Of a stretch of 63,516 nucleotides of DNA, positions 2,179-35,497 are shown in pieces; positions within the stretch are counted from its first letter, which is position 1; every line of letters begins with the position of its first letter. The DNA lies in NCBI RefSeq assembly GCF_016433145.1, contig NC_058130.1:801137137-801200652 (forward strand), written 5' to 3'. Made by a program: the position numbers and the translations under genes. This DNA comes from Gracilinanus agilis. Its lineage: Eukaryota. Under the pieces are notes generated by a model. The model saw only the letters and a list, made by a program, of their open reading frames with translations, searched no databases and had not been told where the DNA came from.

Positions 2179-8478
<6,300 letters not shown>

Positions 8479-11040
8479 CGGCCCTCGGCCCCCGCCCCCT
8501 GCCCGAGGTTGCCAGAAGAGGCTGGAGCCCCTGGGGGGAGGGGGCGCTTGGCGCTATGAGATCACCCATTTCCGGGGAGAGTCCAGAGGCCGGAAGCTTT
8601 GGCTCGCTCGGGCAGCCGGCCGCCTGCTGTGCCGGCCTCTCCGGCCTGGGCTTTGATGTAGAGCATTGCGGGGCTGTCGGCTGTGCCCGCGCAGCACTGG
8701 CCACCCCGCGGGGGCCCGGACGGGCCTGGGGAAGGCTGGGCCCTCTGTAGCGTGCTCCCCGCTGCTCCTTTGTACATAAAAGATGCTAGTCCAGCCCGGC
8801 CGCGCTCCCTCGTCTCTGTGTTTGAGGCGGCCCCGCTCGGCCCCCCCGGCGCCGCCCAGGCTGCAGAACTTCCATGGAACGGGGCGCCCCGGCATGCTCC
8901 CACCTTCCTCTTCCTCCGAGCCCCCTCCAGGAAGCAGGCGCTCTTTCTGCCCAGGCCTCTGGCGGCCCGCCTGGAGGCTGGGTGGGCCCGGCTTCTTCAG
9001 GGCCCCGAGCGGGGCCGGCCCGACTCAGACTAACAGCAAAGACCGCCAGTGCTTAGGGAGCCCCTTCAGCCCCCCGCAGCGTGCCGAGCGCTTTGCAGAG
9101 CTCTCACTGGAGCCTCACAGCTCTGCTAGGAGGTGCTGTTATTCCCCCATTTTACAGATGAGGAAACTGAGGCAGGCAGCGGGGGAGTGACTTGCCCAGG
9201 GCCACACAGCTAGCATGTAAACTTGGGTCCTCTGGACCCAGCAGGCCGGAGGCTGGCCGCAAGGGGAAGGGCCCTGGCGAGGGCACTGAGGCTGACCCGC
9301 CTGGCCGCTCCACAGACCCCTCCGGGGGGGGGGGGGGCGCAGGCTCTTCCCAGCAGCAGCCCGAGTGGCAGCCTAGCTGGGCCTCGCGCTGCAGGCCTGC
9401 CGGGGGGCTTGAGGAGAAATCCAGCTCTGAGAGGGCGCCCAGAGGCCTCCCTGGACCCCCGAAGGGGAGCTTCCCGAGTTCAGTCACAACCGTTCTGAGC
9501 CCCAGCAGGCACCCCAGGCCTGGAGAGGAGGGCTCGGAGGGCTTGCGGCCCGTCTCGGGGCTAGCGCAGGGTGGGGTGCGGCCCGGCTTCTCGCCCGCTT
9601 CTGTCGGCTGGCCATCGGATAGGCCCGACGAGCAGGCTGCCCGAGGCCTTGGTCTGGGGGGCGACGGGCTCTCGGGGTCGGCCCCATGGAAGGGGCCCAG
9701 GGCGGGAGCCGGGCACGGCCGGCCGGTCGACAACAGGCTCTTAGCCAGGGTTCTCCGAGGCCCCGGCTTGGCCCCGGGCAGCCAACGCTGAAAAGGAGCC
9801 CGGCCCGGCCCGGCCTCGAGAGCCTTCCTGCGGCATCACCTGCATCTGAACCAGCGGATCCTCGCGGGCCCCCAAGAGGCCGGAGCGGACGGAGCACCAG
9901 CCCTTCTCCTTCAGCTTGGGGATGGCAGTGCCAACGGGCCCGGGGCCGGGAGAGGAAAGGCCGCTTGGGAGCCTTGTGGCGAGGGCCTGGGCGGGAGAGG
10001 CCGAGGGGGCGGCCCTCCCAGCCACCCTCCTTGGTCCAGTCCAGCCGCTGCCACATGGCCGAAGGATGCGAGGCCAGCCTCGCCTCTGGGGTCCCAGCCC
10101 CCCAGAACTGCCCAGCATTCCCTGTGTGTAGATGGGGGGTGCCTCCCCGCGGGCATCCTTCTGGCCCCCCCAGCCCAGGAGAGGCTGGGAAGCGAGGAGG
10201 GCACTGGTAGGGGGACAGGTCTGCCCTCTGCTCCTCCTGTCCAGGGCTCAGCACGCGGGCTGACAGACAGGGAAATGGGCCGGGGGAGGGGGGGGAGCTG
10301 ACACTGGAACCCGAGCCTTGGGCCCTGCAGCCAGCCCAGGAAAAGGCGGGGGGAGCAGGGCCCCGGGCTGCTTGGCTCCTCGTGCCCTTTGGCACTCCAA
10401 GGGGGGGGCAGTGGCCCAGGTTCACGCTGGGTGGCGGCTGTGGCCTCGGGGTCTGCCCATTGAGTGGCTTGGCAGCAGCTCCCTTGGGTGGGCTCCCCTC
10501 TAAGAGAAAGGCGGCCACATGGCGGGCATGGGGGCCCTCAGGACACGGGGGCAGCTCCTGCAGCAGGTGCCTCCCCCCTCCTCTCCACATCACCGCCATC
10601 TGCAAACACTGAACCAGCCCCCGGAGCCCACTGCCAGGGCTCTGAAGGAAACCTGTCCAGGGCGTGGGTGCAGGGAGGGATGAAGCCTCCATGCCCGCTG
10701 GGCCTGCCAGCCCGGGGCCAGGGACCGCCCAGGCAGAAGGGGGCAGCGGCACCTTCTCGGGAGTGCTGGGGAAGCCGCCGAGGCAGACCCGAGCGAGGAG
10801 GAGCCTCCGGGGAGTCGGGCAGGGCACCGGCTCGGCAGCCGAGGCTTCCCTTGGTCAGCTTTGGCCGTCTCGGTCTGAGCCTGGTCGGCAGACAGTGCAA
10901 CCCAGTGGCTGGCGCTGCCTTCTGGGGGTCCCGTCACGGATTTCCCAGCTGGTGTCTCTCAGCCGGCCCCGGGAGCTGCGGGCAGGCCATTGGAGCTCAG
11001 CACTAAGGGTGGCCAAAGGAAGCACAAAGTCACTCAAGGG

Positions 11041-11885: not shown

Positions 11886-14800
11886 TCACCAGATCAGGTT
11901 CAGAAATTTGACAATTTCGTCATACAGGACGAAGACGACGGCCACGTCCAGGCAGACCCTGACCAGGCGCGGAAGGGTTCCCTTGTAAAACCTGCCGAAG
12001 AGGAAGTGGGGGCAAAGGCAAAGGCCTCTGGAGAGGAAAGAGCCAGGGAGACCCGAGTGCAAATCCAGCCTCGGGCACCAGTCCCTGAAGCTCTGCTTGC
12101 CCGAGTGCCCTTCTCTGCGAGTCCGTCCCTCCAGGGTCCTGGGGAGGGTCACGGGAAATCCAGCAGGCACAGCACCTACGTCATCCCTCCTTGCTCCCTG
12201 CCATCCCTCAGGGCTGGTGTGCAGCTCCGGGAGCTCCCCTCTCCTCCCCTCCCGGATGCCAGAGAAGAACACGGAACATTTATCCAGTCTTTACTGTGTG
12301 CCTGGCACCGTGCCATTTGCTCTGCCTTTAGGAGCTCACTTGACCCTCCCAACAACGCTAGGAAGGAGGTGCTCTTATCTCCCTCAGTTAACAGATGAGG
12401 ACGCTGAGATGGACAGAGGTCCAGTGACTGGGCCAAGTTCCCACAGCTGGTGTCGGAGGCTGGATTTGAACTCGGGTCTCCCTGACTCCAAGGCTGGCCT
12501 ACTATCCACTGTGTCACCTAGTTCCCCCTGAAACTCCAAACTGTGGACCGGGGAGCCAGGGAGAAGTAATGGTCCCAGCTCGCCTGCACTCCACTCCCGG
12601 AAAGGGAGCCCCCAAACCCCAGCCCGGGCAGCAGGCTCAGGTGTGGGGGGGCCTCTGGTGGCTCTCTGGGCACTTGGACCTGAGGCAGCAGCAGAGAAGG
12701 CCAAGGCCCACTGCTGACTTTCAGGGTCAAATTATTCAAGCAAAATGTCTGGACAAGCCAAGACCTGGGCTCCCATGCCAGGGAAATCTCCCTGAGGGCT
12801 TAGGGTGGGCACATCTTAGGAAACTGTTGTACAGGCAGTGCCAGGGAGTTCTCGGTCACTTACGCCCTGACGCCCTCGTTTTTATAGACCTGGATGGCAC
12901 AATCCAATGTGTTTTTATACTTGGAGGCTTCCAGGCTCTGAAATGAAAGATTGGAGACCAGTGAGGGGCCTGCCTTTTGTTTTCTCTCCCTATCTCAGGC
13001 AGGCACTAAACATTTATTAAGGGCCTACTATGTGCCAGGCATTGTGCAGAATTCTGGGGTTACAGTGAGGAAAAGATTCCTGCCCTCAAGGTACTTACAT
13101 TCTAATGGGGCAAGACAACACCCAAAAGAAAGGCGAACATAGGTGCGGAGGGCACGAAGGTGCCCCACACAGGGAATCTGTCTATCCATCCATCTGTATG
13201 TTCATCCATGCGTCCATCGATCCATCTGTCCTTCCATCTATCCGTCCGTCCATTCATCCATCCATCTATACATTCATCCATCTAGCTAGCTACCTCTGTC
13301 CATCTATCTGTGTATCCATCTATCTATAGCTATATCTATATCTATATTTGTGTCTGTGTCAGTGTCTCTATCTGTGTCTATATCCATATCCATCCATCCA
13401 TCTATTCGTTCATGTGTCCTTCCATGACCAGGTCTTTCTACCTTGTCCAGCCTAGAAGTGCAGTGACACTCGCCAGTCCAGTCCCTCAGGACTTCTGGCC
13501 TGCTCCATTTCTCTGACCTAGACCAGGGTCCGGGTCCTTCAACCGCCTGGCGGCCACCCTACTCCAAGAGGCTCACCCTCTTGGGGCCAGACTGCATGCA
13601 GATATCTAGTGCAGCTCCAGAGATCAACCAGCCTCAGCTTCTGAGGCCTCCCCAAGGACTGATTGCCAGCACCCTGCGCCCCGCGGCAGGCGAGGCCTCC
13701 AAAGCACTTGGGTCCCTGCCCTTTGTGTCCATTCCTTTGGGAGCCGGGAGCGTGAGGTGCTTAGAGGAATTTTTTTTTTTTTTTATCCTGGGACTCCATT
13801 CTAGGAGCATAGGGCCACAACCAGTAGGCAATGGGTCACACAGTCGCTCAGGGTTGCCCAGCTGGGAAGTGTCTGAGCCCGGGTTTGAACCTGGGACCTT
13901 TCGTCTCTAGGCCTGGCTCTCCATCCACTGAGCTAGCCCAGCTGCCCCTACTTTAGGTTGCAGTTTCTTTAGTTTTACAGGGTGGGGTTGCTAGCCCCAC
14001 GCCCAACCCTCCTCCTTTTTCATCCGGGCTAGGGACCGTCCCTGGCCCAGGAGTGGTAAGGGTGGGCAGTAGGGGTCAAGTGACTTGCCCAAGGCTTAGA
14101 GGAATTAAGGGGGCACAACTCCTGCCCGAGAACAAGGCTTTCCACTTCAAGTGGGCTTCCTGCTGGTTTTCCCCCAACGAGCCATCAGGCAATGACTGAC
14201 CCCCCTGGCTTTGTTTTACCTGCATCCTTGTTTTTACCACATCAACTGGGGTGTTGCCAAAGACACTGGCTGCTCCTGCGGTGATCCCAAAGATAGCCGT
14301 GATGACGGGGTTCATCTTTTTCTGCGGATTATCATCTAATGGAGACATCAGAGAGAGTGCGAATGCTAGCCAGACCACTGGCCTCACTGGCCCAAGCAGG
14401 CCTTTTAGTCACTCTTCCTGTCCCGGAGCCCAGTTCCGGCCCGAATGCTTGCACCAAGGGAGAGAGGCTGGGGGTCTTCTAGAAGAGAAGAGAAGTGCCC
14501 TGGAGGGACCTGGGAGCCCAGTCTGGCTCTGGTCTGACCAGGGGCCTCCTTAATTGGCTGCCCCTGTTGCAGTGCCCTGGGGGAAGGGCTTGGTCAACCA
14601 GGTCAGCCTTACTCTGGGTTCTGCATCTGGTCTTGGCTTGATGTCTTCCTGCTCTGAGATATCTGGCGAGAGACAGTGCTGTAACGAGAGGGGCCTCGGA
14701 CCTGTGCTCTAGCAGGATCCAAGGCCTTCCTCCGCACCGCACCTGCCTCCCCTTCCCCAGCCGGTCCTCGAGGTTTCTACTCAGCCCAGAGTGAGCCGAC

Positions 14801-17800
14801 CAGAACTAGTGAGAGAATGTCTGTACGGTGGGAGCATCGGGTCTGACTCTTCATCACACCAGTCCTGTCTGGGGGGCTTCTTAGAGTGGTTCTTCAGTGG
14901 ATTAAGGCAAACAGAAGTTCAGTGACTCGCTCAGGGTCACACAGCTAGTAAGTGTCTGAGGTTTGATTTGAATTCAGGTCTTCCAGACTCTAGGCTCAGG
15001 CCAGCTAACTGCCTCCTCTGAGGCACCTTTTGGAGCCCAGCATCCTGATGCCACTCCCAGATGGGCAGGAGCACTAGTGGCCCTCTGGGGATGCTTGTGG
15101 GCATCTGGGCTCAGAGTTCATGGCCTTCCATTCCTTTTTAAATGGCCGGAAGCCTAGGCCTGGGCTATGGCCAGCTGGGCCCTAGCACTCACAACCCTGG
15201 CCTTGCCATCCGCCTCATGCTTCCCCCAAATACACTCCTCCTTCCTCCTTGCTCAGAATGATCTTCAGGTCGGTGTGACCATTGCTGCTAGGAGGGGCAT
15301 GGCTGACCAGCCCAAGCCAGCCTCCAAGGAGAGTCCCCGAGACTCTAGGTCGTGGCATCGCTCCCCGGTTTCTCCTGCCCTGTTCCTAGCCCACGATGCC
15401 CGACCCTTCTGTTGGGCCCTCTGGAGCCCCGTTCTCAGAAATCCCTCGTTCCACATGCCAGCTCCAGTCTTGGTGCAAATGATTTCCTCCAATAGGATTC
15501 TTCTTGAGAGATGGATTTGGCGAGCCAAAGGCAGGGGCAGCGTGTTCCAGGGGTCCAGTAGTCCGAGACAGGCCAGAAGAGGTGTCTGTGTTTGAGCCCC
15601 GAGGCCACCAGCAGGAAGCCAGGGGTTCTCAGCAGCGAGGCAGCAGGGAGGCCGATGGGGAAACGAGGACCGAGAGGGAAGGAGGAGCTGCAAGACTTGG
15701 CACCCAGCATGAAAGGGAGAGAGGAGAAGGAAAGAGGCTGGCTAAGGCTCCCATGCGTGAGGGGGAGTGAAGGCGGGAAGCCAGCCAGCCAGGCTTCGGA
15801 GGGGCTCTGACGAATTCCATTCAGGGCACGCCGAGTTTCCAGTGCCGGTGGGGCATCCAGGGGTCGGCCTAGTGCTGCATTTAGGGGAGAGCCGAGGGCT
15901 GGACAAACTGATGTGGGAGTCATTCTTCAGCTAATCATTGAATCCGTGGTGCAGAAACTGGGACCTTCTTGATACCAGGCCCACCCAATGCCCTGGTGAT
16001 GAAGCACCTCCTGGGTGCCAGGCGCTGGGCTACTTCTAGGGGTACAGAGAAAGGCAAAGGGGCCCCTGTGGTCCTAATGGGGCAGGCAGCCTGTCAGGAA
16101 GGGCATGAAGCAGGGCTCAGAGACGAGTCTGAGCCGAGCTTCCGGGCAGCAAAGGGCAAGAAGGGCAGGTCATGAAGAGCTTCCAAGGCCCCGCCAGGAG
16201 CCCCTGGAGATGCCAGAGAGTCGGGGAGAGGCCGAGGGCACCTGTGCCTTCAGGAGGATGACTTTGGCAGCCCGATGAGGTGGTGCCGCCTGCCTGGTCC
16301 AGGGGTGGGGGGGGCAGAGATGGGAGATGGGGGAGGCCCCCCTTTCTGTCTTCTGGCCCAGTGGACTTCAGGAAACAATGGTGGGGATCTGGGTGGTCCC
16401 TGACCAGAGGCTCCTGGGAAGGAGGCTCTGGCTTATCTCAAGCCCAGCACCCAGCCAAGAGTGGCCCTCAAAGGGCCTTGGCAATGGGGGGGGAGCGGAC
16501 ATAGAAGGGAAGAGGATCCAGAAGAAAAGGCGGGGCAGCCAGGAGGCCAGGGGGTGGCCCAGGCCCAGCCTGGGCTCTCTCAGGCAGGGGGAGGGAGCAG
16601 AAGGAGCCCTTCCGCTCTGGATGTCGGAGCTCAGCTCAGCCAGGGCTGGCTGGCTGGGGGGTTGGGTGGGGCAGGAGGGGCAGAGGGTCCTTGAGGAGCC
16701 AGGAGAGGGGCTCGAGACACTGTGTTCTGCCCTTCGCCCCCTGGGAATCCCAAGGGTTCGGCCTCAGGGCCTCGCCCCTTTCCCAAGATCCCCTCTGACC
16801 GTGCTCAAGGAGCCCCCAGACTCCCAGACTCCCCCCGGGGCCCAGGCCTGGCCATTACCTAGGTACCAGTTGCGGAGGGAGGTCATGGTGAAGAAGCGGA
16901 TGGCCTGGTTGGTTCCTTGCTTGATGATGGTGGCGGTGATGCCCTGGTAGATTCCGTGTAGGCCTGGGGCGGGGAGGGAAGGGCGTCCCCACACATCACT
17001 CTCGCTCCTCCCTCTCCTTCCCCTCCTCCACCTGAACGGGTCCCAGGATGCTGCCCCAGGCAGGGAGGACTGGGGCTGAGGCCCTGGCCTCGGGGGGCCC
17101 AGGGGCTCCAGAGGGGGCACCTCCGCAGACGGGGCCACAAGTACCTTGTTCCCGCACAATCTCCTGAACCCCATGAAAGAAGCCGCGGTACTTGGCTTTC
17201 CCCATCTTCTGATCATGAATAAATTTCACCTGGAGACGACCAAAGGGAAGATGGTCTTCCTGTGGCCAGACTCCGGGTGCCCCAGGCTGCCTCCCTCCGG
17301 TGCCAGGGCCCAGGGAGCCCGAGCCTCTCGCCTGGGGACAAACCCTTCTTCCTGGCACGGTTTCTAGGCAGCCCCATCACAGTTCTCCAGGCTGAGGCTG
17401 CCACCGTCTGCTGAGCCAAAGAACGTGAAGCTGGCACCAGGGGGCGGGTAGGCAGTGACACCACCCCCAGGCCTGTCCCGGGCCCTCGGACGGGAGGGAC
17501 TGGTTTCTCTCAGCCCAGAAAGCTGCGAGTTTCACCTAAAAACTAACCCAACCCCCCCCCCCCACCGGCCAAGGGCAGAGGCCTCTCTCCATTGACGGGG
17601 AGCCCGGGGAGACGTGCAGGAGAGACCGAGATGTAGGTGCGAGACGAGGGAGACAGAGAACAGACAGGCGGAGCACAGCTAGAGGAGGACGGAGACGTCC
17701 CCCCCCCACGGGGAGCTGGGGGAGTTCCTTGGCAGCTGGGGCTTCGCCTGGGCTCAGGATCAGGGTTGGTCCTTGCCCAGGCTCGGTGGCCGGCCGCCTC

Positions 17801-20800
17801 CCCGGGGCCCGTCGGGATCACCATTTCTACCACGGAAGCCTCTTCCTGCACTGGCTGTGCCGGTGCCGTGATTCTAACTCCATAATCATGAGGGCTCCAA
17901 GGCTGAAGTCTAAGGCCTTGCTGCCACCCCCTCTCCTAGCCTGGGCCCCCCAATCCCTTGTGTCTTCTGCTCCGTAGCTCCCTGCCTGCTTCGCTCTGGG
18001 CGTGGACTTAGCCACGGTGCTGTCGGTCTTGGTGCCGGGCCAGGGTCCCCCTTCCGCGGGGCCATCCCGGGCTCCCCTTCAAGGCCCGGGCCCCCTCTCA
18101 AGGCAGGGTCAGAATGCTCAAACCTTGATGGTCTCCAGGGGGCAGACGATGACAACGGCCTCCATGCCGCCGGCTCCGAGGCCACAGAGGAAACTCCTCA
18201 TGTTGCTCAACTTGCCATTGGCGTCTCTGGCGTAATTGCTCAGGAACTGAAATGTGCCAAACCTGCCGAGAACATGCCCAGAATGAACGGCCCGGGCCGC
18301 CCTGCCTCCAGACAAGGACGGTCTGCTGGCACCGGGCCGTAAGTACTGTTCAAAATGACGAAGGAAGGACGGGAGGAAACAGTCTCTGGGCAGTCCTGCT
18401 CTAGGCTGAGCAGGCTCTGGAGGGCCCCCGTGGAACTCGGGAGCGGCTGCAGCAAAGCCACAGGCAAGGCCCCGCCTCGGATGCTGAAGCCTGTAATGAT
18501 GAGGGGGCGTCTCTGGATCTTCGGGAGCCGGGAGGAATGACCGCCCAGGGCCTTCGGCGGGGTGCCTCACTGACCCAAGGCTGCGTTTGGCTTCACGGGG
18601 CGGCCCCAGGAACAAAGGGGGGAGTTCTAGGAGGACACGAGACTGCTGTGGCAGCAGTGGCCTGGACCTCCTGGAAGGCAGAGGCTCCCCTTGTGGGAGT
18701 CACCCCGAGAGCTGCCAGGACTCCAGACTCCGGGACACATTTTCCGGCCTTTTTCCCCCGTTTTCAGGCCCTTCTGGAAACAATTTCTGACCTTTGAGGG
18801 CTCAGCTTCTCCCTCCCTGTCCCAGGTGGTAACCAGTCGGATCGGGGCTACAGCAGTGCTTTCATGGAGTGCGTATTTCTGCACTGCTCGTGTCACAGCG
18901 GAAGACACACATCACACACCCCCAGCAGTTCTTGCCAAATAGGGAGCCTCCCCCCAGAGTTTGGGTCTTTGGGATACGGTCCCTAACGACCGTGTGTGGA
19001 TCGCCTGACCTTCTCCGTTGATCCGCCACTCCATTTCTTAGCCAGTACCAGACTGGTTTCGTGATGACCCAGAGGGGGCACCGTTTTTTCATTGGTTCCC
19101 TGGCTATGGCTGGCCTTTCGTTCTTCCAGATGAAGTTCGGTGGTGTTTTTTGAGTTCCGTGAAATACTTTTTGGATAGTTTGATGGGCGTGGCAAGGCAG
19201 TGGAATCTGGACCCTGCTGGCTCAGCCTATCCATGGGCAACTAATGTCTTTCCAGTTGTTCAGGCCTATCTTTATTAGGGTGAAAAGCGTTTTGCAATTG
19301 TGTTCTCACAGTCGCTGCCTTTGTTTTGGTGGCACACCCCGAGCTGCTTCACATTGTCCTTTTCCACCTCTTGCTCTACGGCTTCATGGGTGTCTGAGCT
19401 TGATTGCTGACTGGCTCTAGGTAGGACTAAATAAGGGGGGAGCTTGGAAGGGAGGCTGACCAGCCTCTCCCTGCTGGTGGTGGCCAAGGCCCAGAGCTCC
19501 GCAGGCTCCCGGGGACCTTTCTGCCCCGTCATTCATGAGACACTTTAAGGCTTTTCAGGCGGGCATCCCAGCCATCTGTGAGCAGGCCTGGCAGGGCACC
19601 AGGTGAAGTCCCAGCAGGACCAGGAGGGCGAGGGGGCAGTGTGGGAGCAGCCCTCCAGGGCACTCACCTCACTGCTGACTTGGGCATAGCGCCATAGAGC
19701 AGGCTGCTGAGGCCCCGATAGAGGCCCAGGATGCCGTGCTCCTGGATGGTCAGCTTTATGCAGTCACCTGGGAGACAGAAGGGAGAAGAAGGGTCATCAG
19801 GGAGCCTGGGGGGGACCCAGGCCGCCGGGTGGGGGGGGGGCACAGAGGAGGGGGCGGCTCTCTCACCCACAGTGGTGTACCGAGGATTCTTGGCCTTCTC
19901 CTCCAGCTGCATCTGGGTCTTGATGTACTCTGTGGGGAAGGTGACAAAGACTTCGATGCCTCCAGCGATGCCACCTGTGGGAGAGANNNNNNNNNNNNNN
20001 NNNNNNNNNNNNNNNNNNNNNNNNNNNNNNNNNNNNNNNNNNNNNNNNNNNNNNNNNNNNNNNNNNNNNNNNNNNNNNNNNNNNNNNNNNNNNNNNNNNN
20101 NNNNNNNNNNNNNNNNNNNNNNNNNNNNNNNNNNNNNNNNNNNNNNNNNNNNNNNNNNNNNNNNNNNNNNNNNNNNNNNNNNNNNNNNNNNNNNNNNNNN
20201 NNNNNNNNNNNNNNNNNNNNNNNNNNNNNNNNNNNNNNNNNNNNNNNNNNNNNNNNNNNNNNNNNNNNNNNNNNNNNNNNNNNNNNNNNNNNNNNNNNNN
20301 NNNNNNNNNNNNNNNNNNNNNNNNNNNNNNAGACAGAAGGAGGGAGCCAGGGACAGAGAGAAAGATGGGGGAGAGGGAGACGCTGTGGGACTGTGGAAAG
20401 CCATCTGGAACTTTGCCGGGTGTCGGCCCAGGCCCCCGTGTGGCCCTTTTTTGTGGGAACGAAGGACTGCTGTCGGCAGGCAGTCAGGCCATGGCAAGGG
20501 ACAGAACCACCAGACACGCGCGCACACTCAGACAGATCTAAATTGGGTCGCCAGATTCCCGGGCCTGGCAGGCCCGGCCGGGTCCCAGACAAGGGGTGCC
20601 CCCTCACTCCCCGGCGCTCTCCCCCTTTTCCAACCCACTCCGGGGCTAAGGGGGTGACTCCCAGGGCAGGGGAGGGTTCCGGACCCCCGTCCACCATATC
20701 AGGGAGCCCTGTTGGGGGCTGAAGTTCCACTGCCGGGGTACGACCAGGAGATCTGGGAGGGGCATAGGCCTCCAGGAGGCACTCCAGATGCTCACTGACT

Positions 20801-21173
20801 TGGGGCACAGCCTGGGCAAAGGCCCGGGGATGGGCTACAGTCCAAGGGGGAGGGGAGGATCCGAAGGGAGGGGGCCGGGAGGGCTCTCCACCGAACAGAC
20901 CAGGGAGGAAGGGAAGGGGGGCCGGGAGGGCGGCGGAACTCCCCGCATTAGCATGAACAACCGTGGCCTCCACGTGACCCGGGCAGCCATGACCCCCCCC
21001 AAGTAACGCCCCTCCTGCCGCCACGCCCCCGACCACGCCCCACTACCGGCCACGATCGCCTTCCCCGTGTGGGTGTTCTTGGTGCAGTGGAGCTTCGAGG
21101 CAGCGGCCAGGCCCAGGCTGAGGCCTCGCTGGGGGAGGCCGGGGCCGAGGCCCTCCTCAGCCTTCCGCCTCAT
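11886..21173 (-). CDS. SLC25A1-like: Mitochondrial citrate (tricarboxylate) carrier paralogue, complete, 319 aa; exons 21173-21047, 19974-19867, 19767-19668, 18262-18124, 17229-17145, 16963-16859, 14335-14220, 12937-12864, 11991-11886
   Basis: Nine GT-AG exons total 960 nt in one open frame. ATG at 21173 has A at -3 and an in-frame upstream TAG at 21189-21191; stop TGA is at 11886-11888. Three carrier signatures are present (PTEYIK, PLETIK, PVDVVK) plus citrate-carrier motifs [17 protein letters not shown] and [11 protein letters not shown]. Internal exon sizes 108/100/139/85/105/116/74 equal those I recall for SLC25A1. Confidence 0.93.
12270..12520. mobile_element. MIR-type SINE (GC-shifted)
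   Basis: Motifs ...tgtgcctggcaccgtgc...cagatgaggacgctgag...cacagctggtgtcggaggctggatttgaactcgggtctccctgactcc. Confidence 0.7.
12995..13125. mobile_element. L2 LINE 3' end fragment
   Basis: aaacatttattaagggcctactatgtgccaggcattgtgc...cctgccctcaagg...acattctaatgggg is the typical L2 tail. Confidence 0.7.
13181..13410. repeat. Degenerate (ATCC)n/(ATCT)n microsatellite
   Basis: Read directly from the sequence. Confidence 0.85.
13772..14093 (-). mobile_element. Composite SINE (SINE1-like segment + RTE-5'UTR-like segment + second tRNA-derived SINE head + A tail), 5'-truncated
   Basis: Poly-T at 13770-13784; 13-bp TSD GCTTAGAGGAATT at 13759-13771 and 14094-14106; a homologous independent copy at 41200-41490. 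Confidence 0.8.
18915..19460 (-). mobile_element. L1 ORF2 fragment in intron 3 of SLC25A1-like, strongly GC-enriched
   Basis: Minus-strand translation gives degenerate L1 ORF2 motifs [29 protein letters not shown] and SLFGKNCWG. Confidence 0.8.
19987..20330. other. Assembly gap, 344 N (SLC25A1-like intron 1)
   Basis: N run. Confidence 0.99.
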
Positions 21174-21682
21174 CCTAGCCAAGGGGTCCTAACTGCGAGC
21201 GCCGCACCCCTCACTCTCCTCGAGCCCTCCCCGGCTCCGCCCCTCGGCCTCCACGTGGCCCCGCCCCTAGCCTAGGCCTCACCCCTGCCGTGACCCGCCC
21301 CCCCCTCCCGCCAGGCATTGATCCCGCCCATCATCTGCTTTGGGCCTCTCTGAGGGCGGGTGGGGCGGGGCAAGCCTAGTCCAGGCGGAGAAGGACCAGT
21401 CCGCCCCCGGCTTCTGATTGGCTGTTGGCAAAGGGCTCGTGGCCCGGATTGGAGGCGGGGATCCTCTCGGTGACAGGCTGAGAGACTGACCGGCTCCCAA
21501 GAGGACGCCTTCCACCAAGCCCTCGACCCTCCTAGTCCCGGCGGAGAGCGCCCGGAGCACCGGGAGGTCCCTTTTACGGACAGTAACCTGAGGCCCCTAC
21601 AGACCGCGCGTTGGCCCGCCTCCGTTTCTGCCTCTGCCGGGCTGCGCGCGGGAGGCCGGCTCCAAGACCGGAACTCGGCCCA

Positions 21683-21719
21683 GTTGCCAGGGAAACGCGT
21701 TCCCGGCTACCATGGCGAC
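21683..21719. promoter_or_regulatory. Two RFX X-box-like motifs: GTTGCCAGGGAAAC (21683-21696) and GCTACCATGGCGAC (21706-21719)
   Basis: Both resemble the 14-bp palindromic RFX consensus GTTRCCATGGYAAC and sit at the 5' end of a motile-cilia gene, where X-boxes are expected. Confidence 0.7.
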
Positions 21720-21789
21720 CAGAGTGTTTGCGGGGCCCGGTGGCAGAGGCCGGGGCAGCTCCGGACAGTGCGCTCCTCAGCGCGCCTGG
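21700..21789 (+). other. TEKT1: Putative non-coding first exon of TEKT1 (start approximate)
   Basis: Strong donor TGG|GTAAGG at 21789/21790; matching acceptor tctcttccctccag| at 23364/23365, 17 nt before the TEKT1 ATG. Confidence 0.6.
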
Positions 21790-23348
21790 GTAAGGCCCGA
21801 GGGGCCTGCGAGGAGGGGCTGCGGCGCCCATAGAGGCCCGGGGCCGGGGCGGCCGGGGCGCCCCCCCCCCACTCCACGCTCCTTCCCCTCCTTCCCCCCC
21901 TCTTTTTCTCCCTCCCCTCCCGGATGTTGGAGCAGGGCGGGGGGAGAAGGTTGTGGCTTTGAGCCCGCGGGCGGCCGGGCGGCCGGCGTGCTCCCTAGCG
22001 GCCCCTCCCCCGGCGGGTCTCCTATCCAGCACCATTTCTTCTCTCTTGGATGCCAGATTGTGCTCCTCTTCGCCGGGACGCCGGGGGCCACTTGCTGCAG
22101 TAATTTGGGGTCTAGCGAGCTGCCTTTGGGCCAGGTCAGGGCGCGGAGGAGACGGGAGCAGCCCTGGGCCCTGGGGAGGGGCAGCCAGGGAGGCCAGGAA
22201 TTCGGCTCATATCATTTGGGTTTGGAAGGCGCCTCTTGGAGGACGACGTTAGGGCGGGAGCAGCTTGGGGACCCAGAGCCTCTCCCCTCTCTTCCAGCGA
22301 GTCTCCCAGGTTGCACCGCGCCTCCTTGTGGCCTTTGTCTAGTTCCCGACCTCAGCAATGTCCCGACAGCCCTGGCTGCGCCCCAGGGGTGGCGGGCCCC
22401 TACTAGCCTCTGTATTCTTCAGACAGCTTCTCTCAACTCCTGGCAGCGCCCGAAGCCCCTGGGGGCAGCCCTCGAGTCTGCTGTGCCCACCCTCCCGGCC
22501 TCTTGGAACCGTCCTTTCCCCTTTGCCCTGGCTGCCAGGCCATTTCTCCCAAACACGCTGCTGCCTGAAATTCCCCTCCCCCTCGTCAGCTGGCCTGACT
22601 CTCTGGGTCTGCGCCAGCCTGTGCCCTGATGTTCCCTGCCCTGCCGCTTCGCAAGCTGGGCAAGGTTTAGAGCCCCTGCCCTTTGCCCCAGGAGTGGCTG
22701 CCACCCTATGGCTGGGCATTCTGACAGTTCTCCAGTTGTTGGCCCCAAGCCTAGTATGGGGTTGGGGATGGTGGGGGCAGTCGGTGCCCTTTAGGAAGGC
22801 TGGTCACTACTGGCCCAGGAGGCACAGTTTGCCATAGGAAGAGTCAGCCCTTGCTCTAGGCTCCCTTCTGTCTGGGCGCACTGGGGCGAGAGGGTGGGGC
22901 TAGAGAAGGCTTTGAGCCCTTGTCCTCACAAAGGGGACACCTGGGAAAGTGAGTGTCTCTCCAATCTCTGCTCTCCCAAACCTAGCAGTGGGGTACAAGA
23001 GTGTCCAAGGAGGTAGCTGCAAAGGCCCCTCAGGCCCCCGAGTAAGAATGCCCATTTCTGATGGAGGGACTCAGAGAGGGCTTCGTGGTGGAGGGAGCTT
23101 TCTGCTAGGCCTTAAAGGATGGCTCAGATTTCACCGAGATGGGGTTGGGGAGAGACTTGGGACTGTCACAAGCAAAGGCATGAGAGTTCATGGTGGAGAT
23201 GAGTGAGGGTGTGTGGTTGGAGACATTGAGAGGCCAGTGCTGAGTTGTAAAGGAACTCAAAGGCTCAAGCTCTGGGCAGGGGGAGAATGAGGAAGACGGA
23301 GCTGACTGGCCCCTTTCGGGGACTTGCCAGAGCCTCCTGAGTTTCTGA

Positions 23349-28176
<4,828 letters not shown>

Positions 28177-28178
28177 TC

Positions 28179-28678
28179 NNNNNNNNNNNNNNNNNNNNNN
28201 NNNNNNNNNNNNNNNNNNNNNNNNNNNNNNNNNNNNNNNNNNNNNNNNNNNNNNNNNNNNNNNNNNNNNNNNNNNNNNNNNNNNNNNNNNNNNNNNNNNN
28301 NNNNNNNNNNNNNNNNNNNNNNNNNNNNNNNNNNNNNNNNNNNNNNNNNNNNNNNNNNNNNNNNNNNNNNNNNNNNNNNNNNNNNNNNNNNNNNNNNNNN
28401 NNNNNNNNNNNNNNNNNNNNNNNNNNNNNNNNNNNNNNNNNNNNNNNNNNNNNNNNNNNNNNNNNNNNNNNNNNNNNNNNNNNNNNNNNNNNNNNNNNNN
28501 NNNNNNNNNNNNNNNNNNNNNNNNNNNNNNNNNNNNNNNNNNNNNNNNNNNNNNNNNNNNNNNNNNNNNNNNNNNNNNNNNNNNNNNNNNNNNNNNNNNN
28601 NNNNNNNNNNNNNNNNNNNNNNNNNNNNNNNNNNNNNNNNNNNNNNNNNNNNNNNNNNNNNNNNNNNNNNNNNNNNNN
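28179..28678. other. Assembly gap, 500 N
   Basis: N run of round length, typical of a scaffolding join. Confidence 0.99.

Positions 28679-28729
<51 letters not shown>
28679..28729. repeat. (AC)n microsatellite at the contig end; mirrored as (GT)n at 63466-63516
   Basis: Read directly from the sequence. Confidence 0.95.
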
Positions 28730-28733
<4 letters not shown>

Positions 28734-29469
28734 AAGCCACTTGATATGATAAATTAATTTATCATTTCCACAAATAGCCAAATCACTTCAGAAGAAAAAG
28801 TTTCAAAATAAGAATTTAGAATCAGAATGCTATAGGCTATCAAAACACATTATCAACAGGGTTGATAAGATAACATCACAACTTTTCCAAATATATACAT
28901 ATATATAATTGTTTTAAAAAGTTTAGTTCATAATTTAATAACATCTAGAACAAAGGGAAATATGCCTTTACAACAATTTACCAAATTTCACCTTATTGTG
29001 AGCAATATTCAAGAATTTAAAAAATAAAACAACTCATTGCCAAATTTTCAAATGATCTTATGCAGGATTGCTTTTTATCACATTTAAAACTATGTATAAA
29101 GTTATCTACTATAAAGTAATTCTATTCCTTTAAAATTATAATCAGACTTCATTAAAGAAATAATTATAAAAACAATTAGCAGTGTATTTATCGTGATTAA
29201 CATGATTATTTACATTGAGTTCCAATTCAATAAAAGTTTATATTACACTCAGTAAGAAAATATACTTCACTGTCAATGAAACCACAGCATGATTTAGTTT
29301 CAGCATTAAATCAGGGTTCACTCACACCTATAACTTCATTCTTATTTCCTTTCAATGATCTGGGCCAATATTTGCTCACTAAATAATAGCTTAATAGTTC
29401 TTTTTTCTGGTGAATCCTTCCTCCAAAAGCTCTCTTCCTTGTCTTTTTCAAACCTCACATTCCCCCACT

Positions 29470-30257
29470 GTCACCCCCAATAGGGGCTTCAGGAATTTGA
29501 AATGGACCTACCTTTGTTCACCCCCAAGATCTGCTCAGGAAAAGGAAATAACAATGCAAATAAAGAAGCGTATTTAAATTCATGTGAGTGTTTGAATGGT
29601 TCTGAATTTCCTTCAACTTCTCCAAAATTGGACCCTCAGTACTAATTTCATCAAGAGGGATGGAGAGGTTGGCTGTTCCTGACTTTCCTATTCAGTCAGC
29701 CTTGGAGAGTTTGTGAAGGATTTATAACATCTACATTTTATAACATTTTGTAACATTTTATAACATTTTGTAACATTTATAACATCTGATCTAATTTGAA
29801 CACTTTTGGACCAAAGACAAAGGAGCTCCGGGGCCATAACTCAGAGCCCCTCTGCGGGCAGCAAAAGGCAGCTGCTGGACCGTCACAGCCACCGACTCAG
29901 TTTCACATCAAGATCTTGGCTAACGGAAAGAAATATCTCTACCACGTTAAGTAATATTTTGTTTTGGAATTAGGATAGTAAGATAGAAATTATAATTTAG
30001 TAAGTTCAGTGTAGAATTAAGTAGGAAGGCCAAGTGATGAAAGCTGGTTGGGAAACATGTAGTTTTTATTACTTAATAGGAAATCTTTTATAATACTTAA
30101 TTTCCTTTACTTCCTTTTACTTCCCTTTTATTTATTTAATTAGTAGTTATAATAAATAAGTTTTTTTTAATAACTGGCCTGAGAAAGATTTTTTAGAACT
30201 GCCTGGTGGCCATATTTTTCCAATGAACAAATTGAGAACCTGTTCACACCTTATACA
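29470..30257. mobile_element. Possible LTR remnant (boundaries uncertain); mirror at about 61938-62725
   Basis: TG...CA candidate ends, internal 10-bp tandem (TAACATTTT[G/A])n at about 29723-29786, and TATA-like and AATAAA motifs. No TSD found. Confidence 0.35.
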
Positions 30258-31189
30258 ACTATTCGTGTAGTCAATATACCAATGATTAGTAATGGGTCAA
30301 TACCCTTTACAGCATTCCCAGGACTGAGGCACCATTGATCCTGAAGTAAGATTTTTATTAGACTGGTGGTATACTGAGCAATTTTGGTCAACCACAGCAA
30401 AATGGCCAACAGAATCTCTTGAACAAGAATGTGCCCTTCTGGGTTAAAGGGGGAAGTACTTGGTGGTCTTGTGGTGACACAGACCTTTACTACGGAGAAT
30501 CTACTGATTGCCAAAAAAAGGTCATTCTTCAACCTTTATGTTTTTGAACAAGGAAATGATTTGTGAGCTGATTCATTCAAGCCTAAAAAATCATTTAAAT
30601 ATCAACTTCTCACTTGTAACAAGTTTGGGGTGCCCTGAGCAGAATCACAGGGGTTATGGAATTTCCTGAAAGCAACAAAATTCTGTTCCTAAGCCAGATC
30701 ACTAGTGCCAGTGGATCTGCCACCATGCAAAAAGGATAAAGAAAGCCTACTTTTCAAGGGATTAAAATTAGACTTCTACAGCTAAAATGGACTGAATACC
30801 AAACCTCTTGCTTTTAAAATGATTTATCCTGCAGTGTTTTGGGCGTACCACACAAAAGTCAGAGTGGCTCTACCACAAAGAAGAACAGAGTGTCCAAGTG
30901 CACCTTTTCCTGGGTGTCCACCAGACTTGGTTTTCCTCTCAAGTGAGGAGCTCAATCTGTGAACTTAATGAAAACCCAGAAAGGCTGATTTAGATCTGCT
31001 CTGAAAATTTCCTCTAACAGTTTAAAAGATATTCTCTTTGGACCCCTCCTTCATGCCTTTCCCCTCCCCAGGAAACCTACTGGGAAACCTCATTATCCTC
31101 CAAGATTAAATAAACCTCCATACTCATCAGTCTCTTCTGCCCTTCTGATTGGATCCTTTGACTGGATGGCAGGTCTGTGGGCATTATGG

Positions 31190-32130
31190 GTTTTTTTAAA
31201 ATATAATTGTATTATTATTTTTAAATATTTTTTCCATGGTTACATGATTCATGTTCTCTCCCTCTCCTTTTCCCCCATCCCATGGCTGAAAAGCAACCCC
31301 ATCAGGTTATACATGTATTATCACTCAAACCCCATTTCCATATTATTCATTTTTGTAATAATCTTTTAAATCCAAAACCCCAAACCTACATCCATATAAA
31401 CAAATGACAAATCATATGTTTTTCTTCTGCATTTCTACTCCCACAGTTCTTCCTCTAGATGTTGATAGTATTCTTTCTCATAAGTCCTTCAGGATTGTCC
31501 TAGATTTTTGTTAGAAGCAAAGTATCACATTTGATTGTCCCACAGTGTTTCAGTTATAATATTCTCCTGGTTCTGTTCATTTCATGCTGCATCAGTTCAT
31601 GTAGCTCTTCCTAGTTCTTATAGAAATCAAATAGTTCACCATTCCTTATAGCACAATAATATTCCATTACCACCATAGGCCACACTTTGTTCAGTCATTC
31701 CCCAATCAAGGGACACCCCCTCATTTTCCAATTTTTTGCCACCACAAAGAGTGTGGCTATAAATATTTTTGTACAAACATTTTTCCTTATTATCTCTTTA
31801 GGGCTCAAACCCAGCAGTGGTATGGCCAGATCAAAGGGTATGTATTCTTTTAAAACCCTTTGGGCATGATTCCAAATTGCCTTTCAGAATGATTGGATCA
31901 ATTCACAACTCCATCAGCAATGCATTAGTGTCCTAATTTGGCCACATCCTTTCCAACATTTAATATTTTCCATTACTGTCATATTTTCCAATCTACTAGG
32001 TGTGACGAGGTACCTCAGAGTTGTTTTGATTTGTATTTCTCTAATAAGGAGGGATTTAGAACACTTTTTCATATGATTATTGATAGTTTTTATTTCTTCA
32101 TCTGAAAAATGTCTATTAGTATCCCTTGAT
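31190..32130 (-). mobile_element. L1 3' portion (ORF2 C-terminus + 3'UTR); mirror at about 60065-61005 (+)
   Basis: T-rich start followed by marsupial L1 3'UTR/ORF2-like sequence (e.g. rc ggaaaggatgtgg...ggacactaatgcattgctgatggagttgtgaattgatccaatcattctg). Confidence 0.8.
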
Positions 32131-32305
32131 GGTCATGGGCATTATGGGACATCACCACAGTCTTCTCTCTTTTTCCCACTAACTACTCTGCTTTTGGACT
32201 TTCCCATCATGCCCCTGTGCTGGGTACTTTCTGCATTCCCTTTCTTTCCTCCTTTCCTTTTCAGCTTTCTCTTGTGTGTTATCTTCCTCCAGCTTGATGA
32301 CCACT

Positions 32306-32504
32306 GGGGCAAGTAGGTGACACAATGGATTGAATTCTGGACCTGGAAGTAGAAAGACCTGAGGTCAAATCTGGCCTCAGATACTTCCCAGCTGTGTGAC
32401 CCTGGGCAAGTCACTTGAACCCCATTGCCTACCCTTACCACTCTTCTGCCTTGGAGCCAATACACAGTATTGACTCCAAGTTGGAAGGTGAGGGTTTAAA
32501 AAAA
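32306..32504 (+). mobile_element. Opossum SINE1-like tRNA-derived SINE; mirror at about 59691-59889 (-)
   Basis: ggggc...tcaaatctggcctcagatacttcccagctgtgtgaccctgggcaagtcac...ccttaccactcttctgccttggagccaatacacagtattgactccaag...ggtttaaaaaa. Confidence 0.85.
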
Positions 32505-33274
32505 TAATTGGGACATAAGTCTACTAAAATAGTTTTGTTTAATCTAACATTAATCTAATATCCAAGTCACTTCCTATTTAGATACATCTCCAAATTGACA
32601 TAGTTCCCTCATGCCCTCCAACATATCTCTCTCCTCCAAGATAAGTTGAGATAACATTATAGGAATCTTGAACAAAGAAAATATGTTAAAATACAATTTT
32701 GTACTTTTGAAAACAGTCAATATTCAGTTCTTTCCTAGAGTCCTCCTCTAGGGTCCTCCAGAAACAGAAAAGGGATCTATTCTCAGCCTTCAGTTTGTAG
32801 ATCATGCCTCTGATAGACATATTGTACAATCCTAGCATATAGACAAAGGGGAGAAGGTCCTGTTGAATTGACTCAGATTAGCTATGGTTAGTAATGGAGT
32901 CCAGCTAGAGGATGAAGCTGGCTGTCCTAACAAGAGGGAGGGGTAAGAGTGAGTAGAATTCTTTCTCCTCCCCCACCCCTGGGAGCAGTTGGACCAGAAG
33001 GCAAAAACTGTTTAACTGAATCCCTCTTAGTTCAAGCTATGGAGGCTGTACAAGCTTGGTAAATTCAGGGGCAAGTTGGTAAACTGACAGGGAATAATCC
33101 CACTGAGGTCAGCAAGTCTCACTGTTTAAACTATTCCCTAAACCCTAGGATAGAATAGACTCCAGGTTGTCTTCAAATACAGATGACTTGCTCTCAAGGA
33201 AAGGAAACTGCACCAGTGCTTATATGAATGGATCTTTCCTTTGGTAAAGTATATGGATGGTGAGTATATCCTAG

Positions 33275-35460: not shown

Positions 35461-35497
35461 CTTTAGTGTGGAGAAAGCAATGAGCTAAATAAGAGAT

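Follow-up and report, generated by a model that had tools for sequence, protein, structure and literature searches.

Two distinct promoter modules, probably brought together in marsupials, between TEKT1 and an SLC25A1 ohnologue

We identified a head-to-head gene pair, TEKT1 on the plus strand and an intact SLC25A1-like carrier on the minus strand, within a 63.5-kb window of the Gracilinanus agilis genome (the whole stretch of DNA analysed; Table 1). The initial annotation of this DNA had proposed a second citrate-carrier copy facing TEKT1, and both gene identities and their orientation are borne out. All of its coordinates for the carrier start codon and for two X-box-like motifs were also reproduced. 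The first of these motifs, X-box A, starts 510 bp from the carrier ATG (A at 21173), and 617 bp separate the same ATG from the putative splice donor of TEKT1 exon 1. When CpG islands are defined by 200-bp windows with a GC content of at least 0.5 and an observed/expected CpG ratio of at least 0.6, overlapping runs cover approximately 20851–22270. The 744 bp from 21047 to 21790 have a GC content of 0.706 and an observed/expected CpG ratio of 0.69. The motif and CpG scans thus agree with the earlier description of a single CpG-rich block that holds both GC boxes (seven) and CCAAT boxes (two). A further conserved block lies at 22027–22158.

Table 1. Features of the TEKT1/carrier locus in Gracilinanus agilis, with positions counted from the first letter of the window.
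Feature	Position	Strand	Description
SLC25A1 ohnologue A ('tricarboxylate transport protein, mitochondrial-like')	11886..21173	-	9 coding exons, 319 aa
Carrier coding exons 1-5	21173-21047, 19974-19867, 19767-19668, 18262-18124, 17229-17145	-	
Carrier coding exons 6-9	16963-16859, 14335-14220, 12937-12864, 11991-11889, plus stop codon	-	
Carrier exon 1	21047..21173	-	targeting sequence and start of helix 1; 100% match to P0128 residues 1-43; followed by GT donor
CpG-rich block	20851..22270	.	spans carrier exon 1, spacer, TEKT1 exon 1 and start of TEKT1 intron 1
Proximal carrier promoter	21176..21404	-	six of seven GC boxes; E-box CACGTG (21252)
Double CCAAT module, NF-Y type, carrier sense	21405..21459	-	boxes at 21417-21421 and 21448-21452, 31 bp apart
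X-box A (distal), RFX-type palindrome	21683..21696	+	GTTGCCAGGGAAAC; one mismatch to GTNRCCNNRGYAAC, either strand
X-box B (proximal)	21706..21719	+	GCTACCATGGCGAC; one mismatch to GTNRCCNNRGYAAC; deeper conservation than box A
Forkhead-like TGTTTGC, candidate FOXJ1 site	21725..21731	+	just 3' of X-box B
Putative non-coding TEKT1 exon 1	21720..21790	+	inferred; donor CTGG/GTAAGG after 21790
TEKT1 exon 2	23365..23573	+	acceptor ...ccctccag; Kozak GCCACCATGG; ATG 23382; Pfam Tektin E = 1.2e-10

TEKT1 is recognized by a Tektin domain (Pfam accession PF03148) on two exons (E = 1.2e-10 and 1.9e-18), and its N-terminus, read from exon 2, is 92% identical to that of Monodelphis TEKT1. The block taken as exon 1 shows 0.56–0.72 identity among marsupials, and its GT donor is retained in Monodelphis and Sarcophilus and reads AT in Dromiciops. 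The ATG within a CCATGG sequence at 21713 was considered as the TEKT1 start codon and rejected because the TEKT1 open reading frame begins at 23382.

Translation of the carrier exon set yields exactly a protein predicted for Gracilinanus agilis (XP_044512680.1; P0128 in Table 1). Three single exons (3, 4 and 7) match the Pfam Mito_carr domain, and all three PX[DE]XX[KR] signatures are intact (PTEYIK, PLETIK and PVDVVK). The carrier is 67–70% identical to vertebrate SLC25A1 proteins. In a phylogenetic tree it falls within clade A, apart from the main copy (clades A and B are supported by SH-aLRT values of 82 and 94, respectively), and gene order also supports its orthology with clade A. No eutherian or bird copy was present among the 120 best matches. 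Judged from tree and gene order, the marsupial 'SLC25A1-like' gene is the vertebrate A ohnologue (slc25a1a in fish), an old ohnologue and not a young duplicate or retrocopy.

The marsupial carriers form a group with a long stem branch (0.68) and contain 15–23 changes at 164 positions that are otherwise invariant in the other vertebrates sampled. The carrier has 22 changes at otherwise invariant positions, which may bear on the substrate specificity of this predicted citrate carrier. Carrier exons were concatenated for a codon comparison with Monodelphis, and the resulting dN/dS of 0.097 shows purifying selection.

The head-to-head layout of TEKT1 and the carrier was found in eight other species besides Gracilinanus. 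The initial annotation had called for a comparison with other marsupials and sauropsids, and we found the same arrangement in all four of the additional marsupials checked, in sauropsids and in bowfin. Notamacropus was compared by gene order only (isoform X1 locus). The bowfin carrier has a Tektin gene and a CH-domain SMTNL2-like gene as its neighbors. On this comparison, the order TEKT1/carrier A/SMTNL2-like gene dates at least to the common ancestor of bowfin and tetrapods.

The distance from the X-boxes to the carrier ATG is 1.3–4.4 kb in non-marsupials (lizard, turtle, gharial, toad and bowfin) and 339–816 bp in four marsupials, with the value of 339 bp in Monodelphis. Among the species compared, shrinkage of the spacer to approximately 0.34–0.8 kb is thus seen only in marsupials. 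This short distance would place the marsupial pair within the operational definition of a bidirectional promoter, and the start sites of the two genes in Gracilinanus are likely less than 1 kb apart. Literature searches returned no publication that treats tekt1 and slc25a1 as a gene pair, describes an X-box within a bidirectional TEKT1 promoter or reports how the opossum SLC25A1-like gene is expressed.

We defined X-boxes as imperfect 13–14 bp palindromes that fit GTNRCC(N0-3)RGYAAC. Both Gracilinanus boxes fit this pattern with one mismatch each, and the Sarcophilus orthologue of box B is the near-perfect GTTCCCATGGCAAC, which has zero mismatches to the narrower consensus GTHNYYATRRNAAC. In a promoter alignment of eight species (Gracilinanus, Monodelphis, Dromiciops, Lacerta, Gavialis, Emydura, Bufo and Amia), the arrangement of X-box A, X-box B and the forkhead-like site is alignable throughout, from bowfin to marsupials. 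The starts of boxes A and B are 20–25 bp apart in all eight (23 bp in Gracilinanus), and the box B core CCAT[G/A]G is invariant (8/8). Monodelphis, Lacerta and Gavialis keep the left half-site of box A (GTTGCC), and variants of it occur in Dromiciops, Emydura, Bufo and Amia. At the forkhead position, six of the eight species have TGTTTG, TGTTTAC or TTGTTG; Emydura has TGTGTA and Amia has CGTTGC. The module always faces TEKT1 and lies 0.67–2.5 kb upstream of the TEKT1 ATG exon across species. The corresponding distance in Gracilinanus is 1.66 kb, and the boxes are placed directly 5' of the conserved block that ends in the splice donor at 21790. An ETS/GABP-like CCGGAA at 21668 was considered as a conserved mark of a bidirectional promoter and rejected; the aligned sequence is CTGGAA in Monodelphis and Dromiciops.

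Short GC-rich palindromes might also arise by chance and lack a function. Consistent with this explanation, both boxes depart from the ideal palindrome and single X-box-like matches to the strict consensus are not enriched over the 63.5-kb window (6 found, 4.7 expected). The pair, however, is not reproduced by chance: none of 2000 sequences simulated with a first-order Markov model of the 3-kb promoter neighborhood contained two matches within 40 bp (0.21 X-box-like matches per sequence; P = 0.0185 for two or more). An apparent window-wide enrichment under a looser consensus was inflated by a duplicated AT-rich region, and we replaced it with this local simulation and the cross-species comparison. 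Position, spacing, orientation and core are all kept in eight species, and this conservation effectively refutes the chance explanation, which we regard as highly improbable. The earlier claim that genuine RFX-type X-boxes lie at the TEKT1 5' end thus stands.

Because the X-box pair and the forkhead-like site are kept beside TEKT1 in eight species, we interpret them as the ancestral RFX/FOXJ1-type promoter of this gene. We regard the module as an ordinary cilia-type TEKT1 promoter that is deeply conserved. In a reported assay, FOXJ1 induced a human TEKT1 promoter reporter and RFX3 enhanced its activity (PMC3710277), and multiciliated-cell core promoters have been reported to be enriched in X-boxes, with Rfx2 recruiting Foxj1 to promoters (PMC5245798). 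The TEKT1 module (21683–21731), with two X-boxes and a forkhead-like TGTTTG, carries the signature of a motile-cilia or flagellar gene. RFX2/RFX3 dimers would bind the X-boxes and then recruit or stabilize FOXJ1. Plus-strand transcription would start near the X-boxes and yield a short non-coding exon 1, with splicing from its donor at 21790 to the ATG exon, which begins at 23365.

The carrier side of the spacer contains a different set of motifs. Its CCAAT boxes appear as ATTGG at 21417 and 21448 (CCAAT on the minus strand), and GC boxes (GGGCGG or CCGCCC) occur at 21237, 21261, 21295, 21324, 21354, 21363 and 21401. A motif scan found no TATA box in the carrier promoter region. The GC boxes beside the carrier ATG are conserved in Monodelphis and Dromiciops. 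The CCAAT module is conserved in Sarcophilus, represented by one of its two boxes in Dromiciops and deleted in Monodelphis.

Several observations implicate these motifs in a promoter of the carrier's own. First, Lacerta, Gavialis, Emydura, Bufo and Amia have paired AGCCAATCA-type CCAAT boxes in carrier sense, 29–32 bp apart, which in these five species lie 130–500 bp upstream of the carrier ATG and 1.1–3.9 kb from the X-boxes. Second, lizard, gharial, turtle and bowfin have a separate CpG-rich stretch at the carrier ATG, and no X-box-like site was found within 1 kb upstream of the ATG in these four species. (The same thresholds detect no CpG-rich stretch at the toad carrier ATG.) Finally, marsupial conservation forms two separate peaks at the X-box and CCAAT modules (0.58–0.82 identity), and the intervening spacer has an identity of 0.14–0.55. 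As far as conserved motifs can tell, the carrier possesses its own separate and equally ancient CCAAT/GC-box promoter. This module (21176–21459) combines two CCAAT boxes with GC boxes and an E-box, lies in a CpG island and lacks a TATA box; it would be the NF-Y/Sp1-type promoter of the minus-strand SLC25A1 ohnologue A and is most likely broadly active.

We consider it probable that the 744-bp stretch comprises two distinct ancient promoter modules that were pushed together by marsupial evolution. Against their independence, the X-box and CCAAT modules of Gracilinanus are only approximately 230 bp apart within one common CpG island, and the CCAAT module is entirely lost in Monodelphis. We infer RFX/FOXJ1 binding, the positions of both start sites and the mutual independence of the two modules.

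The initial annotation had read the same stretch as a bidirectional promoter in which the X-boxes serve both genes. The X-boxes are real, the genes are head-to-head and a single CpG island covers both 5' ends, but the X-boxes appear to be TEKT1's own element, kilobases from the carrier outside marsupials, and the carrier has a separate paired-CCAAT/GC-box promoter in other vertebrates. Since the X-boxes are distant and the carrier promoter is separate elsewhere, a shared promoter would be at most a marsupial novelty that arose through shrinkage of the spacer. Shared control of the carrier and TEKT1 in marsupials is possible on sequence grounds, and cilia- or spermatid-specific expression of the carrier is purely conjectural.

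Such a marsupial-only bidirectional promoter would have its palindromic X-boxes drive both strands. The carrier would be coexpressed with TEKT1, with enrichment in ciliated cells and spermatids or restriction to them, and might serve flagellated cells in the supply or export of citrate. The short distance between the X-boxes and the carrier ATG in four marsupials and the single CpG island of Gracilinanus are consistent with this model. So is the Monodelphis carrier, which lacks the CCAAT module and is still under purifying selection. However, the ancestral NF-Y/Sp1-type carrier promoter is retained in Gracilinanus and Sarcophilus and partly in Dromiciops, and we found no Logan transcript-derived protein in the didelphid or dasyurid clusters, a weak argument against the model. 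Accelerated protein evolution on the marsupial stem followed by constraint is a pattern of tissue-specialized paralogues and would fit a change of role. Yet in Monodelphis, Dromiciops and Sarcophilus the distance between the carrier region and the end of a chromosome is 0.7–2 Mb, and the region has a very high GC content (GC3 of 0.75–0.80). Biased gene conversion is therefore another possible cause of the fast evolution of the carrier.

Dasyurid gene models bear on the same question. The Sarcophilus carrier has two annotated first coding exons, one with the canonical ATG at 10824 and one upstream at 10001–10492 (both in locus L008). The NCBI isoform X1 (P0137) starts at an ATG within the Sarcophilus X-box B described above, reads through the CCAAT boxes and has a donor near 10492. 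Antechinus carrier isoforms have an N-terminal extension that is homologous by sequence. With the dasyurid upstream exon, low-complexity sequence takes the place of the segment where helix 1 begins. The annotated X1 model is a hint that the X-box region of dasyurids gives rise to carrier-sense transcripts, and in this respect it favors a shared promoter; alternatively, the upstream exon may represent a by-product transcript or an over-extended model. Taking these arguments together, we regard a true shared promoter as rather unlikely.

Divergent transcription is common at CpG-island promoters. The carrier might thus be broadly expressed from its CCAAT/GC-box promoter while the TEKT1 module also fires divergently in RFX/FOXJ1-positive cells, giving an upstream and probably non-productive transcript spliced into exon 2. 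The two Sarcophilus first exons would be explained by this dual use, and the Antechinus isoforms agree by sequence. Its evidence consists of annotation models, however, and in Gracilinanus the X-box ATG does not open a comparable reading frame. We consider this dual use quite improbable.

A more far-reaching proposal is that spacer shrinkage in marsupials, accompanied in Monodelphis by loss of the CCAAT module, put carrier A under the RFX/FOXJ1 module and turned it into a citrate carrier specific to ciliated cells and spermatids. This would account jointly for the burst of substitutions on the stem, the later purifying selection and the dasyurid X-box transcripts, but we judge it unlikely. Knock-down of slc25a1a in fish causes broad developmental, non-ciliary phenotypes (PMC4487986; PMC4746751), which argue against an ancestral cilia-specific role of the carrier.

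Under the preferred reading of two ancient modules, the TEKT1 promoter would have an RFX/FOXJ1-type grammar in the eight species compared, a pair of X-boxes separated by approximately two helical turns and accompanied by a forkhead site. Its conservation makes it a useful reference for the prediction of cilia-gene promoters. The marsupial 'SLC25A1-like' gene can now be placed as an A ohnologue under selection, with no eutherian or bird copy among its best matches. The locus also represents a natural experiment, in which the same two modules are separated by 4.4 kb in toad and by 0.34 kb in opossum. Expression compared across these species could reveal whether a housekeeping-type promoter comes to follow a tissue-specific neighbor simply by being close to it. 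If the carrier were indeed cilia- or sperm-specific in marsupials, it would connect mitochondrial citrate export with flagellar cells in a new way.

The closest known systems are the human TEKT1 promoter (Didon et al., 2013; PMC3710277), which belongs to the same gene, and the RFX/FOXJ1 promoters of multiciliated cells (Quigley and Kintner, 2017; PMC5245798). They resemble the Gracilinanus module in having X-box and forkhead motifs at the core promoter. The excerpts of these two papers available to us make no mention of a double X-box architecture or of conservation from bowfin to marsupials. The mechanism expected from these systems is that RFX acts as a scaffold for FOXJ1, and the Gracilinanus case is known from sequence and conservation alone.

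Zebrafish slc25a1a ('tricarboxylate transport protein A') falls in the same tree clade as the marsupial carrier. The marsupial copies differ from the fish gene in their long branch and in their substitutions at otherwise invariant positions. SLC25A31 (ANT4) is a testis-specialized mitochondrial carrier paralogue. The marsupial carrier, too, is an additional copy of a housekeeping carrier whose sequence has changed at an accelerated rate, a likeness that would fit a sperm or cilia role. In contrast to a young duplicate or retrocopy, the marsupial gene is an old ohnologue.

Mammalian bidirectional CpG-island promoters have start sites less than 1 kb apart and often contain NF-Y, Sp1 and ETS/GABP sites. 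The marsupial locus shares with them the head-to-head layout, a single CpG island, CCAAT and GC boxes, the absence of a TATA box and a spacer below 1 kb. It differs from them in that the TEKT1 and carrier modules appear to be of separate origin and to have been ancestrally 1.3–4.4 kb apart.

The first 28 kb of this vertebrate DNA has a GC content of 52-72%, save for the kilobase with the N gap. The SLC25A1-like carrier is encoded by nine minus-strand exons, single ones of which match Pfam Mito_carr, and these agree exon by exon, with zero differences, with the annotated Gracilinanus protein (P0128; NCBI XP_044512680.1). The TEKT1 ATG exon matches Pfam Tektin, and its N-terminus is 92% identical to that of Monodelphis TEKT1. 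A calponin-homology (CH) exon belongs to an SMTNL2-like gene, and CH-domain genes adjoin the carrier in other species too.

Features of the carrier-TEKT1 window, by window position
Feature	Position	Strand	Remarks
CH exon, SMTNL2-like gene	~5.4-5.6 kb		
Carrier exons	21173-21047, 19974-19867, 19767-19668, 18262-18124, 17229-17145, 16963-16859, 14335-14220, 12937-12864, 11991-11889	-	translation is P0128
CpG island	~20851-22270		
E-box CACGTG	20963-20968		
Intron-1 X-box-like match	20974-20987		GTGACCCGGGCAGC
E-box	21252		
CCAAT boxes	21417, 21448	-	
Conserved element	21565-21599		GTCCCTTTTACGGACAGTAACCTGAGG
X-box A	21683-21696		GTTGCCAGGGAAAC; one mismatch to consensus GTNRCCNNRGYAAC
X-box B	21706-21719		GCTACCATGGCGAC; one mismatch to consensus GTNRCCNNRGYAAC
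TEKT1 exon 1 (putative), 3' end	21790	+	
TEKT1 intron-1 block	22027-22158		
TEKT1 ATG exon	start ~23365, ATG 23382	+	clean acceptor upstream; Kozak GCCACCATGG
First N gap	28179-28678		
Inverted duplicate, arms	28700-46098, 46099-63495		
Second N gap	45849-46348		

TEKT1 is incomplete in this assembly: exons to ~28110 match Monodelphis TEKT1, and its last ~130 residues are matched nowhere in the window. DNA past the first N gap has a GC content of 0.2-0.4 versus 0.6-0.7 before it, a sharp difference that suggests a misjoin. The AT-rich right half is a perfect inverted duplicate (arms 100% complementary) centred on the second N gap, so that motif counts there are doubled; it looks like a fold-back assembly artefact, not biology.

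The initial annotation placed two RFX-type X-boxes (here A, distal, and B, proximal to TEKT1) in one CpG block with GC and CCAAT boxes, and every coordinate was correct on re-reading. The carrier ATG and the start of X-box A are separated by 510 bp, and the interval holds seven GC boxes, two CCAAT boxes and an E-box, with no TATA box. Single X-box-like matches across the whole window occur at chance level only. The tandem pair, unlike these, is not a chance occurrence: when the 3-kb neighbourhood was simulated 2000 times with a first-order Markov model, two matches at most 40 bp apart never arose. A third X-box-like match overlaps an E-box in carrier intron 1, ~60 bp downstream of the exon-1 donor. 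The conserved element ~100 bp upstream of X-box A is near-identical in Dromiciops; Monodelphis has lost part of it, and it is weak in Sarcophilus.

We identified related loci by a word search with carrier exon 4, an uninterrupted reading frame, which retrieved the Monodelphis carrier (P0001) and other marsupial ‘-like’ proteins. A search with P0001 then returned ‘-like’ copies in turtles, lizards, gharial, frogs, coelacanth and sharks, along with fish ‘A’ and ‘B’ proteins. Seven loci were compared with DNA (Dromiciops, Lacerta, Gavialis, Emydura, Monodelphis domestica, Amia ocellicauda and Sarcophilus harrisii), and Notamacropus for gene order only. All eight have a Tektin gene head-to-head with the carrier, so this layout is kept in the other marsupials and sauropsids examined and in bowfin (Amia); a CH-domain gene lies tail-to-tail downstream of the carrier wherever the flank extends far enough. 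The Bufo gargarizans locus contains no Tektin gene inside the 10-kb flank of the carrier, and its X-box module has the expected orientation. Bowfin and tetrapod loci share the TEKT1 / carrier / SMTNL2-like order, which makes it at least as old as their common ancestor.

A maximum-likelihood tree of 43 proteins (quick search) divides vertebrate SLC25A1 into two clades (SH-aLRT 94 and 82). Clade B comprises the ‘main’ copies of eutherians, birds, squamates and amphibians plus fish ‘B’ proteins. Clade A comprises fish ‘A’ (slc25a1a), shark, coelacanth, frog and reptile ‘-like’ copies and every marsupial ‘-like’ copy. Tree and gene order agree in placing the carrier as the old SLC25A1 ohnologue A. 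None of the 120 best matches to P0001 is a eutherian or bird clade-A protein, suggesting that the gene was lost in both groups. Knock-down of zebrafish slc25a1a causes mitochondrial depletion and heart, brain and craniofacial defects (PMC4487986, PMC4746751), and the ancestral clade-A role thus appears general rather than ciliary.

The marsupial stem is long (0.68 changes per column), and of the 164 columns without variation across 33 other vertebrate A and B proteins, 15-23 differ in marsupial carriers, mainly by conservative changes (e.g. V60I, M154L, T191I, G261S). All three PX[DE]XX[KR] signatures are intact in P0128, and dN/dS between Gracilinanus and Monodelphis is 0.097 (dS 0.286; codons of concatenated exons); the carrier is thus functional and constrained. 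Rapid stem evolution could represent a change of role. Alternatively, it could represent GC-biased gene conversion, conceivable because a chromosome end is 0.7-2 Mb away in Monodelphis, Dromiciops and Sarcophilus and carrier GC3 is 0.75-0.80. The clade-A wombat protein (P0004; Vombatus ursinus, UniRef) has PLKTIK in place of PLETIK, a GARWGSARG insert, an odd N-terminus and a long end branch (0.82); this degraded-looking model may reflect poor gene prediction or gene decay in wombat.

In TEKT1 sense, all eight species have X-box A, ~9 bp and X-box B in the same order, followed in most by a forkhead-like TGTTTG, TGTTTAC or TTGTTG. The X-box B core CCAT[G/A]G is invariant, and the box is near-ideal in Sarcophilus (GTTCCCATGGCAAC), Emydura (GTTCCCATAGCAAC) and Bufo (GCTTCCATGGTAAC). 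The two boxes start 20-25 bp apart in every species (23 bp in Gracilinanus, Monodelphis, Dromiciops and Lacerta). The TEKT1 ATG exon lies 0.67-2.5 kb downstream of the module. A conserved GT donor lies ~70 nt past the module in Gracilinanus, Monodelphis and Sarcophilus (AT in Dromiciops). TEKT1 is predicted to have a short, non-coding first exon ending at 21790. The X-boxes form a real, conserved and very old module of RFX/FOXJ1 type, which most probably belongs to TEKT1.

The 132-bp block in TEKT1 intron 1 is 92% identical to Monodelphis (flanks 72-81%) and does not align in Dromiciops. It has a possible acceptor (tcctatccag|, ~22029), a possible donor (gggccag|gtcagg, ~22136) and a 17-codon upstream open reading frame; in didelphid TEKT1 it may serve as an additional 5'-UTR exon or as an alternative first exon. 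Amia carries a perfect cAMP-response element (TGACGTCA, L007 ~6330-6345) ~30 bp upstream of its TEKT1 X-box, an element absent from the marsupial module. Bufo has five X-box-like 14-mers (L003:8291-9179; four GTGACCAGGGAAAC, one GTCACCAGGGAAAC) 150-275 bp apart and 0.8-1.7 kb upstream of the carrier ATG, which resemble copies of a repeat, and a run of ~20 ATATTGGAGTAA units ~20 bp apart (L003 7207-7547).

The carrier has its own candidate elements. Lacerta, Gavialis, Emydura, Bufo and Amia each carry, 130-500 bp upstream of its ATG, a carrier-sense pair of AGCCAATCA-type CCAAT boxes with a spacing of 29-32 bp, and all of these except Bufo have a separate CpG-rich stretch at the ATG. The Gracilinanus pair (31 bp apart) is ~250-280 bp from the ATG; Sarcophilus also has a pair, Dromiciops keeps one box, and Monodelphis has lost both in a ~130-bp deletion (L006:9797-9836 versus window 21390-21520). 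Across three marsupial orders, intergenic conservation forms two distinct peaks, with identities of 0.56-0.82 over the X-box module plus exon 1 and of 0.58-0.72 over the CCAAT module, against 0.14-0.55 elsewhere. The carrier thus probably has an NF-Y/Sp1-type promoter of its own, as old as the X-box module.

X-box A lies 1296 bp from the carrier ATG in Lacerta, 2467 bp in Emydura, 2728 bp in Gavialis, 3679 bp in Amia and 4363 bp in Bufo, and neither the reptiles nor bowfin have an X-box-like site within 1 kb of that ATG. The nearest annotated X-box is 339 bp away in Monodelphis, 699 bp in Dromiciops and 816 bp in Sarcophilus. Since this distance is long outside marsupials and short within them, the ‘one promoter’ is at most a secondary marsupial state reached by spacer loss. 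In place of the single shared promoter that the initial annotation proposed, the comparison points to two modules that appear separate and ancient. These two old modules, TEKT1's and the carrier's, have come close together in marsupials only.

That the X-boxes nevertheless co-regulate the carrier with TEKT1 seems to us rather unlikely. Their proximity in marsupials speaks for it, as do the surge of protein changes along the marsupial stem and the Monodelphis deletion, which leaves X-boxes but no CCAAT module near the carrier; the carrier's own promoter is, however, kept in three of the four marsupials with promoter DNA compared. Also in favor, the NCBI-annotated Sarcophilus isoform X1 (P0137) has an upstream first coding exon (L008:10001-10492) of 164 codons. 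Within L008:9995-10492 it starts at the ATG of the X-box B CCATGG core in carrier sense and crosses X-box A and both CCAAT boxes before being spliced to exon 2, whereas the start of the canonical isoform is at L008 10824. Antechinus isoforms, likewise in favor, have a homologous N-terminal extension. Against it, this dasyurid exon, an annotation model, swaps the start of helix 1 for low-complexity sequence; as a weaker point, the didelphid and dasyurid clusters hold zero transcript-derived proteins. A mixed arrangement, in which a broad carrier promoter is joined by a divergent by-product transcript from the TEKT1 module, is improbable. We favor two separate promoters, and treat TEKT1-carrier co-expression as a testable question, not a finding.

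Assignment of the X-boxes to TEKT1 fits characterized systems. In the core promoters of multiciliated cells, the X-box is the motif with the strongest enrichment, and Rfx2 recruits Foxj1 there (PMC5245798). A human TEKT1 promoter reporter is induced by FOXJ1, an effect enhanced by RFX3 (PMC3710277), and this response agrees with the module described here.
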